From Pocillopora damicornis (lineage: Eukaryota): a DNA stretch of 64,000 nt. The notes beneath the pieces are model-generated. The model was not told where the DNA came from. It was given only the letters and a program-made list of their open reading frames with translations, and ran no database searches. How positions within the stretch are numbered: the stretch's first letter is position 1; each line of letters begins with the position of its first letter. Shown here piece after piece: positions 1 through 4,582 of the stretch. Made by a program: the position numbers and the translations under genes. The stretch is from assembly GCF_003704095.1 (NCBI RefSeq), contig NW_020847478.1, positions 1 to 64,000 on the forward strand, written 5' to 3'.

Positions 1-3000
1 ATAAAAAGCATTGATGATATAAAATGTATTAAGTGCTCTCGTGGCAACACGTTTTCTGACAAGCCAACTAAGCAAACTTGTAAGAAATGCTCCATTTGTG
101 CAGTTGGACAGAGAGAACTGACACCCTGCAATCTGACACATGATAGGATTTGTGGTAACTGTGACAAAGGATTCTATGGCAGTAAAGACACAGGATGTAA
201 ACCATGTTCTGCCTGCTGTAATGATAAATATGATGTGCGCATTCCTGAATGTCGAAATATAGCAAAAAACAAACAGTGCGGCTATACAGAGCGATCCATA
301 ACTGTGTGTCAGGAACAAAACAGCTCTAAGAAAACTTCTCCAAAGAAATCCTCTATCATTACAATAGTTTTGACTGTGACGACAGCACTACTATTTGTTG
401 TAATCTTAACACTGGTGATTATAAAGTGCATCAAATACCGCAGAAAAAATAGGCGTCAAAGAACGGACTCATGTACTGCGTTGCTGCCATCTGCAGACGA
501 AGGTAAAGTTTTAATCATTACCTCATATTGGGATTCAGTGATGTTGATTTGAATTGAAATGGCCAATTGATAAACAGCGATGAAAAAGGATTAAAAAAAG
601 ATCCACCAAGGGCCTTTCATCGCAAAAACAGAAAGCTGAAGACTTCAAGATTAACCCCTGGGTACTATGAACTTAAGAATCATTTTTTTTTAATAATTCT
701 CCCACCAAAAAAAGGAAATGCAAGATTGTATACAATCATAAGAACACCATGATAACTACTACCAAATTTAAAACCTATCCTCTTCCTTTCTTTAGCACCA
801 CGGAGTGAATTGATAACACTGGAAGATCCAACACCACATGGATCACAACAGATATTACATTTTGATAAATCAGGTATCTTGATCCAATTCAATGATGCAA
901 ATTGTTTCTCCAGTGATTGCCGAGGAATACAACTAAAGATATGTTGGGATGAAAATTCTATACCTCTTCAGCCTGGTGAAGTACAGCTTAGCCCTGTGAT
1001 AAAATTTCAGCCTTATGGGAAGCAACTATCCAAACCAGTGCAAGTCAGAATACCTCATAGTGCTTTGGTGTATTTAAGCAATGGCTGGAACATCAAGCCG
1101 AAAAGCTCTGTACCACACAAAGGCTCAATTGTATGGAAGGGGGAAAACAAATTCCAAGTCCACAATAATGAAGTCAGCTTTCAGGTTGATAATCTTACCT
1201 CCTATGTTATCATCGGTACCTCACTTGATAACGGCAAACCAACAAAGAAGCGCTTTCAAGGCGCTGTTTTTGGTGGAGTGGGCACAGTTGGTGTGGACTA
1301 CACAGCATACTTATATATCTTTGATGACAGTGAGTCATCATTTGAGGTATCTAGATAACAATAGTTTTTATAAACTGAGAACGTTAGAATTCCCTTGGCT
1401 TTCCTCCTCTAACCCTCAATGAGTGGCTCTGACTAGCCTCCACTGGGTACACAAGTATATTAATTTTCAGAAACCAACGATAAACGCTCTTTCATCAGGA
1501 AGTGGCAAACAAAAACAGCTTGATAAAAATCTTTTTTTAAATTGCAATAGGTATCAAAGTGAGATGTAGAAACATTCCAAGGAAACATGCATTCACACTG
1601 ACATTGAATCTTAAGATAGGGTTAAAGATATACTTCTTTTAATTAAATGATTTGTTTTGGAAATCTTCCAGAAAATCATGCAAGAAGAGAAATCAACCGG
1701 TAGAACCCTGCTTGGTTCCCCTCAGTCCTTTTATGTCGAGACTATGATTGATACTAAAGTAAAGATCTCAGTCAAAGAACCAATGGAAGGATGGATTGTT
1801 GGAGAGATAAAACCAGAGGTAGTTCTCAGTAGTGCAGTGTATTAATCAACCCTTGTCATAACAAATACGTTATTAATAAGGCATAAATGTAGCTGCACTA
1901 GTGAGTTGTAATTTGTTGCATGTAAGCTGTCTATGTTCAAACATTCAATCCCCCTAGATTCACTTCTCTTGTCACAGGCTAAAGTGTACTAATAAAAAAT
2001 GGGTCTAAAAAAAGGTTTTTAAATTGTTTAGAAAATAATAATTTTGAAAACTTTTTCAATTATTTTCAGCAAAAGTAATGGCAAATGGAATGATATTAAA
2101 TTCACTGAAAATACCAAACAATGATATTGATGATATTATTAATAGTAATAGTGATACTACACTCTGCATTGAGTCAAACAAACCTGGTTATATGAGAAGG
2201 TGAGCTCACTTCGTTGATTTGTCCAGTTTACCACAAAGAAATGGATCAAGATATCTTGAACCATGCCTCCCATTAGTTCATTAGTGAGTACTATTCTGCA
2301 TTATCAGTTTTTTGAATAATTATTGATTTTGGTTGGGGAACTGTGTCAGTTCACAAAGAGATTAGAAGTCCTTTTTGGTTGTTAATCAATCTGATGTAAT
2401 ATTCATATGGTATCTGACTTGTAGGCTTTGCTTTAATCACACAGTTCATTACACAAACAAATTTGAAGGATTCTTATCAAGCAATACCCAGAACAACAGT
2501 AAAGTTTAAACATGACAATGGCCGTAACCGAGACTTCCTTTGTGTGTTTGAACTAACTGCAGAAGATACCACAACATCGATTTGTGCTGTTGCCACGATT
2601 AGAGAGGTAAGTGCTTTTTTCATCAATCTAAATTAATGCAACTAAATAATAATTTGGTTAAAAATTAATTAAATGTGATTGTGATGAATGGATTTATTAG
2701 CCAGCATGATATTTTTTATCATACAGTTGTATGCAATAACATTTGTGGCAATTGGTTTTGCAATTCTGAAAATCTTGAAGTCTGATGTCCTAGACTTTAT
2801 ATTAAAAGGCTTAAGATATAGTCATGAAAACAAAAAGAAGACTGAGATATGTGATACATGTATAATGGACTGAACACATTGCTCAATTACACTATTTTCA
2901 TTTTTGTTTCCTCCTTGGCAGGATCCATCTAGGAAGTTTCAGGAGCACCAACCAGGATTTGGTAATGGCAGTCATCAATTTGTGACTGGGAGAAACTTGT

Positions 3001-4582
3001 GTGGTAAGAACACAATTGTTTTGATTTTATTTCCAGGATTGAGTTATTGGTACTCAAAATCACTATTTAGCTACCTTAGGATCCCAGAGATAATTATTTC
3101 ACTTTTGCTTGGTAAATAAAATGAAATTTGGAAATGCAGTTTTGTTTTATTAAAACTGAGTACAGTGTATCTCTGGACTACAGAGGATACATTTTATCTT
3201 CAGTAGCCACAATGTAGCTCTGTTACAGTTTTGATTTATCATCTAATCAAAGGAAACCTGTATGAAGTGGTTTATAATAGGTATATTCATTTTCACATAC
3301 ATCCTTGTCAATATAGACCAGTCTTATCAAGCTCCCTTTTTTCATAATTTCCATTATAATTACTAGGTTATACCTTCTATAGTAGAGGCTTCCATGCTCA
3401 AGAGGTAAAAACATGTTCAAGAGAGATTTATTTTTGAAAAAAATTGTTGTAGAAAGATGTAAAAAGCAAAATTGGCTTAGTCTGAATATTGGTTAATTAG
3501 GTACATGTGGTTTTTAATGTTGTTGAGAAACTGGTCTTCCTAGAGGAAGAGAGAAACTAGCTGCATGAGGAAATAATTGAAAGACAGAGACTCTAATGGA
3601 ATCACAACTCAAATTCAGCAAAATCAAACACCAGTATCAGTTAGTGTACATATGGTCATTCTGCCATGGACCAAGAAAGAACTCTTCCTTTCCACAACAA
3701 GAATAGCCAATTGAGCCTAATCTTAGACAATTTACAATACTCTACCAAGGTTCTAAAATTTGGAATTCTCTCCAAATATCAATCATTGGTTTGACTTTTT
3801 TATTTTTAAAAGAAAAATGATAATTTTTTAAGTGAAATGAGTGCAAATTAGCCAGCCACACATCCACATCCACAACTTAATTACAAACATATTGACATAC
3901 GAGGTGGCCTCACCTATAAGCCTGGTGGTTTCTTGGAGGTTTCCTTACTCTACCATACTGTTAAACCTGTATAAATATTATATCTTTAGTGGCCAATAAA
4001 TAAATAAATAGATGATGGTGATGACAAAAGTGGGGGTTACCTGTGACTAGTTACAAGTGAGAAATTTGGAGGGAAAGCTCAGTTTTTCAGTGTCTACTTA
4101 AGATCTTAAGAATGTACCTCAATTTTTTTTGGGTAATTTGTGCTTTTTACATTTTTCAAAGACAAAATCGTTCCTTGCAATGTAACTTACCCCCCAATAA
4201 GTTGCCTTGACTCAGCTGATTGATGCCTTTGTACTCTCTTAAAGATCCACTGATCGTCAACCCAGACAAACCATCACCTTGTCTTAAAGATCTTCCAAAG
4301 GAGGTACTTGAAGCTCTTTGTGTGAAACTTGATAAGCCCCTGAAAGGAGTTGGCAATTGGAGGCATGTTGCAACGTGCCTTGATTTCACCGAGGAACAAA
4401 TTCAGCGTTTCCGGAATGAAATGTTGACTCCTGACGGAAGTCCTTGCACTGTTATGTTGGAGGCACTGGTGACGAAGTCACCACAGTTCACTGTGGCAGA
4501 ATTTGTACGTATTCTACAAACAAGGAAGATTCAGCGCTTTGATGCGGTGGAAGTTCTGGAGCCTCATTTACACAGCTGTTGA
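1..4582 (+). CDS. G1: TNFR-superfamily receptor with cytoplasmic ZU5-UPA-death domain (UNC5-like tail), 5'-partial. Exons <1..502, 796..1346, 1672..1818, 2445..2606, 2922..3003, 4245..4582
   Basis: Frame 1 is open from base 1 and encodes TNFR cysteine repeats (CIKCSRGNTFSD..CKKCSICAVG..PCNLTHDRICGNCDKGFY..CKPCSACC), then a TM (IITIVLTVTTALLFVVILTLVII) and a basic stop-transfer. All introns are GT-AG with compatible phases (1,0,0,0,1). ZU5 motif SPVIKFQPYGKQLSKPVQVRIPHSA; UPA-like KRFQGAVFGG..DYTAYLYIFDD..EEKSTGRTLLGSPQSF; terminal DD (LCVKLD..GNWRHVA..SPCTVMLEAL..TVAEFVRIL..RFDAVEVLE). Extra small exons between 3004 and 4244 cannot be excluded. Confidence 0.85.

Follow-up and report, generated by a model that had tools for sequence, protein, structure and literature searches.

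The window analysed here is a stretch of 64,000 nucleotides (nt) from the coral Pocillopora damicornis (NCBI RefSeq assembly GCF_003704095.1; contig NW_020847478.1, positions 1 to 64,000 of the forward strand), which is C4113:1-64000 in our contig numbering. Window 1-4582 (+) holds six exons of one gene, and a TNFR ectodomain and a ZU5-UPA-death-domain tail are almost certainly joined in one spliced, expressed transcript of this gene, because the exon joints are found in RNA, collinear orthologues carry all four Pfam domains, and the modelled tail matches the ZU5-UPA structure of UNC5B. Judged from its sequence, the encoded product is probably a type I membrane receptor with a p75NTR-like TNFR ectodomain, one transmembrane (TM) helix, a short basic juxtamembrane stretch, and a tail of ZU5, UPA, a linker, and a death domain (DD). 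An earlier note on this DNA had proposed that phase-compatible GT-AG splicing unites the TNFR, TM, ZU5, UPA, and DD parts, and the RNA joints, the in-frame coding length of 1782 nt, and the collinear orthologues bear this out.

Gene structure and transcripts

All introns of the gene are of the GT..AG type with compatible phases, and the coding parts sum to a multiple of three, remaining in frame to the TGA at 4580-4582 (593 codons); no N runs were met in window 1-5200. The exons are collinear with the Stylophora pistillata protein P0050 (LOC111337445, 789 amino acids (aa)), gap-free with two split codons in between, at 59-84% identity; the gene is therefore the orthologue of Stylophora LOC111337445, minus ~194 N-terminal residues. 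Briefly, exon 1 (1-502, cut by the contig start) encodes the TNFR repeats, the stalk, the TM helix, and the basic juxtamembrane stretch, ends in phase 1, and corresponds to P0050 residues 195-360 (70% identity). Intron 1 (503-795, 293 nt, GT..AG) links this receptor exon to exon 2 (796-1346; P0050 362-544, 79% identity), which encodes ZU5 and the first UPA strands. Exon 3 (1672-1818; P0050 545-594, 74% identity) carries the middle of UPA (KIMQEEKSTGRTLLGSPQSF...GW) and overlaps the Pfam UPA hit at 511-580 of P0050, and exon 4 (2445-2606; P0050 595-648, 78% identity) encodes the C-terminal half of UPA. Exon 5 (2922-3003), which ends in phase 1, encodes a UPA-DD linker that is predicted to be disordered (P0050 649-675, where the pLDDT is <50), and exon 6 (4245-4582; P0050 677-786, 84% identity) encodes the DD and the stop codon. 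All six lie on the plus strand. An alternative acceptor of exon 4 at 2425 was rejected for its phase misfit, the RNA joints placing the acceptor at 2445, and a candidate exon at 2070-2199, an open reading frame (ORF) with good splice sites, was likewise discarded, as no phase fits and no RNA joint includes it.

RNA-seq contigs of four runs from four separate studies, labelled coral or marine metagenome, were aligned on window 1-4800. The joints 502>796 and 1346>1672 are present in all four runs, and 1818>2445, 2606>2922, and 3003>4245 in three of the four each; for 1818>2445, the corresponding loose ends are present in the fourth run (X8). The junctions 502/796 and 3003/4245, which the earlier note had named, are both exact. 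Summed contig depth, a rough measure, is several-fold higher over exons than over introns in every run.

The 5' end of the gene lies off the contig, window base 1 being the first base of C4113, so that ~194 N-terminal residues are outside the assembly contig and the window holds the 3' three quarters of the gene. Beyond window base 1, the RNA contigs reach a further 226 to 1065 nt upstream, so that the transcript runs off the contig as the gene does. A search of P0050 residues 1-194 against the assembly (234.35 Mb, 4,393 contigs) gave no high-identity match to the missing 5' exons; the matches on contig C521 are not these exons, because they belong to ~32%-identity paralogues that are orthologous to a DD-less Montipora type.

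Some variation was seen among the transcripts. A minor alternative donor at 1329 (1329/1672), 17 nt upstream of the main donor and frame-shifting, was found at depth 3 in a single run. Two deletions relative to the window, both in frame, were also present: 9 nt in the stalk (346-354) in run X11, and 12 nt where the TM helix ends on its cytoplasmic side (418-429) in runs X8 and X11. Both of these runs carry many substitutions relative to the window, and therefore probably come from another Pocillopora lineage. Within intron 5, at 3717-4004, many RNA contigs break, with unrelated loose ends and odd non-GT-AG 'joints', a sign that this part may hold a dispersed repeat or mobile element. In the RefSeq model P0054 (P. 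verrucosa isoform X2), the N-terminus is unrelated, an extra 12-residue exon matches window ~3367-3404, and the C-terminus is frame-shifted, the DD exon being read in another frame (window ~4483-4542); a joint for the extra exon (~3367-3404) is absent from all four RNA runs.

Domains of the encoded receptor

The window was scanned with Pfam exon by exon, and full-length orthologues stood in for the joined protein. TNFR_c6 was detected on exon 1 (nt 34-153; E 6.4e-9; 36.5 bits, cut-off 29.4), ZU5 on exon 2 (E 1.9e-9; 38.1 bits, cut-off 21; Pfam core 858-1097 in a domain of ~nt 837-1217), and Death on exon 6 (E 4e-7; 30.5 bits, cut-off 22.6; Pfam core 4313-4561, recovered in the genome scan at C4113:4313-4561). 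Exons 3-5 gave no Pfam match when scanned singly, and UPA, which is split over exons 2-4, went undetected exon by exon. In the orthologues, UPA scored 30-34 bits (cut-off 27), over as much as positions 2-134 of the 140-position profile, and TNFR_c6 scored 60-77 bits with 2-4 repeats; TNFR_c6, ZU5, UPA, and Death were all above the Pfam cut-offs in P0050, P0055, P0056, and P0057. The expectation that Pfam would return all four domains thus held on the window exons for TNFR_c6, ZU5, and Death; for UPA it failed on single exons and held in the full-length orthologues. An NCBIfam scan, with a prokaryote-centred library, returned nothing relevant.

UPA begins at ~nt 1239 in exon 2 (KKRFQGAVF...YLYIFDD). 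When exon 2 was compared with UNC5B (PDB entry 3G5B) by phmmer, query residues 44-180 aligned to chain residues 40-182 (E 1.7e-5), spanning ZU5 into the first UPA strands via the KRFQ..AVF and Y..DD motifs, so that the UNC5 resemblance noticed earlier for the UPA-like block is supported by alignment. With the UPA segment of P0050, exons 3-4 share 74-78% identity. The TM stretch consists of 23 hydrophobic residues (nt 355-423) followed by the basic stop-transfer sequence KYRRKNRR. The orthologues P0045 and P0049 start with a hydrophobic leader; the N-terminus and signal peptide of the window gene are off the contig. In the full-length orthologues, TNFR_c6 repeats alone precede the TM helix, with no Ig or thrombospondin type 1 ectodomain.

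Similarity of the two halves to known structures

A family profile built from 16 members was searched against PDB sequences. The ectodomain, which in the orthologues forms a tandem of two cysteine-rich units, matched that of p75NTR in two stretches (E 6e-18), and the tail matched UNC5B 3G5B in one stretch that takes in ZU5, UPA, and the greater part of the DD (profile 396-760 to chain 19-374; E 1.6e-16), with ankyrin-2 (8.7e-6) and ZO-1 ZU5 following at ~1e-5. By these profile matches, the ectodomain is closest to p75NTR and the ZU5-UPA tail to UNC5B. A DD profile of four sequences was nearest to the DDs of ankyrin-2/3 and p75NTR (ankyrin-2, E 4.9e-6).

An AlphaFold2 (AF2) model of P0050 has a mean pLDDT of 68, with 80-90 in the domain cores. 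The best match of this model in a Foldseek search was 3G5B (E 7.7e-18), and in the VIA-align comparison model residues 367-647 superposed on UNC5B 541-828 with a Z-score of 19.6 and a root-mean-squared deviation of 3.8 Å over 267 residues. The modelled UPA (residues 505-647) superposes on the UNC5B UPA, its strands reaching residue 645, against residue 828 in UNC5B, and the modelled ZU5 matches those of UNC5B and ankyrins with Z 11-20. Rat NLRP1 FIIND (Z 17.5), ankyrin-B (17.3), and CARD8 FIIND (16.6) were the next structural matches. From these matches, ZU5 and UPA are predicted to be packed together in the manner of UNC5B. Helices 694-785 form the helical bundle region of the DD, which is outside the rigid match; of the superposition on the UNC5B ZU5-UPA-DD structure that the earlier note had envisaged, the ZU5-UPA part was obtained and the DD part was not. 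A complex prediction of the P0050 ZU5-UPA with the DD scored 0.01, which is no verdict and counts neither way, and an ESM Atlas search returned UNC5 and UNC5CL clusters only (0.84-0.86), a lead and nothing more.

Distribution and phylogeny of the family

An exhaustive HMMER search with exon 2 yielded 38 representatives at E <= 0.001, five of which combine TNFR_c6 with ZU5. The word-based homologue searches return few matches each, and the apparent restriction to Hexacorallia is accordingly a lower bound. In addition to the Stylophora protein, full-length relatives were found in Oculina patagonica (P0045, 805 aa), Acropora palmata, A. muricata, A. digitifera, Montipora capricornis, M. foliosa, Nematostella vectensis (A7RRZ5, 790 aa), and Actinia tenebrosa, and exons 2-5 are 94-100% identical to Pocillopora verrucosa proteins. 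The search beyond Pocillopora that had been suggested thus led to TNFR_c6-ZU5 proteins in stony corals and sea anemones; the family occurs in Scleractinia and Actiniaria, an extent that is again a lower bound. Gene models of at least eight species share the architecture, without a stop between the parts. Moreover, in a genomic contig of sea-anemone type (L002, 3001-6590), the TNFR repeats, the TM helix, ZU5, and the start of UPA are encoded in one 512-aa ORF, with a Death exon downstream, and the protein is 58% identical to that of Actinia. The TNFR-ZU5 fusion is therefore independent of any splice model, and the position of intron 1, after the juxtamembrane segment, is not universal in the family.

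The closest ZU5-UPA paralogues in the P. damicornis genome are two tandem TNFR-TM-ZU5-UPA genes on the minus strand of C521 (L007, C521:16500-19400; L008, C521:36000-38600), with 32% identity. They share ~50% identity with Montipora P0041, a protein that stops after UPA and has no DD, and they group with Stylophora P0062; no DD was found on C521 in the genome scan. In a maximum-likelihood tree of the ZU5-UPA exon region, all TNFR-linked ZU5-UPA sequences form one clade apart from UNC5-like proteins (100/99), within which a DD-bearing scleractinian subfamily (99/99), a DD-less subfamily (100/100), and separate anemone lineages are distinguished; the robust/complex split in the DD-bearing subfamily follows coral phylogeny. 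On this evidence the hexacorallian family has a DD-bearing subfamily, to which the hybrid receptor belongs, and a DD-less one. Because of the same topology, with its TNFR-linked clade, coral-like split, and anemone lineages, the fusion is regarded as old, its minimum age being that of the Scleractinia-Actiniaria split, and as vertically inherited.

Autoprocessing site and possible mode of signalling

PIDD1 and FIIND proteins cut themselves at an HFS or SFS motif located at the end of ZU5 (PMC8195603). The homologous site reads N-L-T in the window and SLH, RLS, or KLG in other family members, never containing His-Phe, and its middle residue is a Leu that is invariant across the family (L494). 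UNC5B has Q-L-G at this site, and the UNC5-like relatives P0033 and P0035 have HFS and HFT, respectively. UNC5B is not known to be autoprocessed. Self-cleavage of the coral ZU5 is thus unlikely on the basis of its residues, and any gating should therefore be conformational. The earlier note had supposed that a TNF-family ligand may be coupled to gated death signalling in the style of UNC5 and PIDD, an idea that is plausible, but whose PIDD-style (autoproteolytic) half is disfavoured by the absence of the HFS motif.

The DD is kept sequestered in the ZUD module of UNC5 and in ankyrin-B, where it folds back on ZU5 together with UPA (PMC9162469). By analogy, a ligand such as a TNF-family trimer or a neurotrophin-type cystine-knot dimer would engage or cluster the cysteine-rich ectodomain of the coral receptor, and this engagement would alter the packing of ZU5-UPA against the DD, which would otherwise be held closed and inactive. 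The freed DD would recruit DD adaptors, leading to caspase or NF-kB type outputs, and the DD-less paralogues could serve as decoys or modulators. Gating would be conformational rather than proteolytic, because the autoprocessing motif of ZU5 is missing. We regard such conformational gating of the DD by ZU5-UPA as quite possible, if just short of probable.

Several observations weigh against the picture of a gated hybrid receptor. The ligand, the induction of death, and the autoinhibition are all putative. The AF2 model does not place the DD on ZU5 as in 3G5B, the rigid match being confined to ZU5-UPA, and the pLDDT of the UPA-DD linker is <50 in a model made from an alignment of only 16 sequences. 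Since the DD profile is nearer to the DDs of ankyrin and p75NTR than to that of UNC5B, the ZU5-DD interface of UNC5B is not necessarily retained; in the Nematostella member P0025 and in P0013, the DD has diverged beyond what Pfam detects. As for the gene itself, its N-terminus and signal peptide are missing from the assembly, and each RNA joint depends on short unitig overlaps (mostly 28-30 nt, 84 at most) rather than on a single full-length read.

Some of these points could also be accommodated by the main alternative, a receptor without a gate, in which ZU5-UPA would act as a docking platform and the DD would serve non-apoptotic, NF-kB or differentiation-type signalling, as in p75NTR and EDAR. 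The ZU5 of ankyrin binds spectrin and that of ZO-1 binds its own partners, and the coral ZU5 also matches both of them. The absence of a docked DD from the AF2 model and the closeness of the DD profile to ankyrin-2/3 and p75NTR suit this explanation, as does the retention of ZU5-UPA in DD-less paralogues, which implies that the unit is useful without a DD. We nevertheless consider it rather unlikely, as UNC5B is by far the best match of the whole tail (E 1.6e-16 vs 8.7e-6 for ankyrin-2; Z 19.6) and the ZU5-UPA-DD order is that of a module known to self-close (PMC9162469). A gate of the PIDD/FIIND type, in which a self-cut at the ZU5/UPA border would release an active UPA-DD fragment, could be argued from the match of the ZU5-UPA fold to the FIIND of NLRP1 and CARD8 (Z 16.6-17.5) and from the HFS and HFT found at the homologous site in P0033 and P0035. 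It is nonetheless highly improbable for the coral receptor, given the family residues without His-Phe (N-L-T in the window; SLH, RLS, and KLG elsewhere), the Q-L-G of its closest relative UNC5B, and the invariant Leu, not Phe, in the middle of the site.

The architecture itself might be thought an artefact, in which neighbouring TNFR and ZU5-UPA-DD genes were merged by read-through or mis-assembly. The truncation of the gene by the contig start, the aberrant ends of the P. verrucosa model P0054, and the shortness of the unitig overlaps would be in keeping with such a merger. The same junction was, however, obtained in four studies, the gene models of at least eight species share the architecture with no intervening stop, the TNFR-TM-ZU5 ORF of the anemone-type contig is uninterrupted, and every run shows exons covered much more deeply than introns, rough as this measure is. 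A merger is accordingly close to refuted, and we give it next to no credence. The reading preferred here remains that of one receptor, with a DD that may be gated conformationally by ZU5-UPA.

Genomic neighbourhood and possible origin

The hybrid receptor gene is the first gene of a large tandem cluster of genes with TNFR cysteine-rich domains, which extends on both strands over window 13500-61600 and on to ~C4113:156000, with matches at ~13.5, 20.0, 29.6, 34.9, 42.7, 47.0, 53.8, and 61.1 kb within the window and further ones outside it, at 109-156 kb. One member of the cluster, located ~43 kb downstream (47132-48025 and 48258-48587, plus strand), encodes a bare death receptor with TNFR repeats, a long Ser/Thr-rich stalk, a TM helix, and a DD exon, leaving no room for ZU5-UPA. 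Its DD is the closest in the genome to that of the hybrid receptor (43% identity, E 3e-14).

It is conceivable, if improbable, that the hybrid receptor is a surviving intermediate linking two dependence-receptor lineages, either as an ancestral p75NTR-type receptor with ZU5-UPA, which would have been lost in the bare-DD receptors of bilaterians and of the neighbouring coral genes, or through a common origin of the UNC5 and TNFR death tails. If this were true, death receptors would have possessed conformational gating of the DD by ZU5 since ancient times, and such gating would not be a speciality of UNC5 and ankyrin.

Comparison with known receptors

Like UNC5A-D, the coral receptor carries ZU5, UPA, and DD in this order in its cytoplasmic part and is probably of type I topology, and UNC5B is the best match of its tail in both sequence and structure, the two also sharing the lack of HFS. 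The ectodomain of UNC5, in contrast, binds netrin through two Ig and two thrombospondin repeats, whereas that of the coral receptor consists of TNFR cysteine-rich repeats; furthermore, the coral DD is nearer to those of ankyrin and p75NTR, and the TNFR-linked ZU5-UPA forms a clade of its own. By its ectodomain the coral receptor is not a member of the UNC5 family, and names of the type 'netrin receptor UNC5B-like' are therefore wrong and misleading. With p75NTR (NGFR, TNFRSF16), it has in common the TNFR ectodomain, for which p75NTR is the best match, one TM helix, and a C-terminal DD resembling that of p75NTR. It differs from p75NTR in that its ectodomain, as seen in the orthologues, is a tandem of two cysteine-rich units, and from p75NTR and the TNFR death receptors in that ~280 residues of ZU5-UPA are inserted between the membrane and the DD; in known vertebrate death receptors only a short linker is found there. 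Ankyrin-B (4D8O) shares the ZU5-UPA fold (Z 17.3), and the DD of ankyrin-2 is the most similar solved DD by profile; ankyrin, however, acts as an adaptor in the cytosol and has two ZU5 domains besides its ankyrin repeats, as against one ZU5 in a TM receptor. PIDD1 and the FIIND proteins NLRP1 and CARD8 likewise have a ZU5-UPA fold followed by a death-fold domain, but are cytosolic and activated by self-cleavage at HFS or SFS, a motif absent from the coral receptor.

Relatives of the gene are publicly named "uncharacterized protein", "netrin receptor UNC5B-a-like", "Netrin receptor ...", or "Tumor necrosis f...", and the family proteins are present in RefSeq/UniRef with correct precomputed Pfam domains. 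A text search of the literature (ZU5 with TNFR, coral, sea anemone, amphioxus, and TNFR_c6) found no paper on a TNFR with a ZU5-UPA tail, although a mention in the 2014 coral TNFR survey is possible, and ZU5 and UNC5 are unmentioned in the TNFR-evolution papers PMC4979521 and the PITA preprint. As to whether the architecture had already been listed, a point left undecided in the earlier note, it is visible in RefSeq/UniRef under other names, and no paper describing it was found; it is discoverable in public records and apparently uncommented.

Death receptors on the one hand and dependence receptors of the UNC5 type on the other are regarded as distinct classes that control their DDs differently, and the expansion of coral TNFRs, which is much discussed, has been associated with stress, bleaching, and immunity. 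Among invertebrate genomes new death-domain architectures are frequent, which tempers the surprise at finding another. Coral expression studies may be misled by wrong names of the kind "netrin receptor UNC5B-like". This conserved, expressed hexacorallian receptor represents a natural domain swap, in which a p75NTR-like ectodomain is placed on an UNC5-type tail, and it permits a direct test of the ZU5-UPA clamp as a portable module for silencing a DD. Together with its DD-less partners, it adds an overlooked class to the expansion of coral TNFRs.

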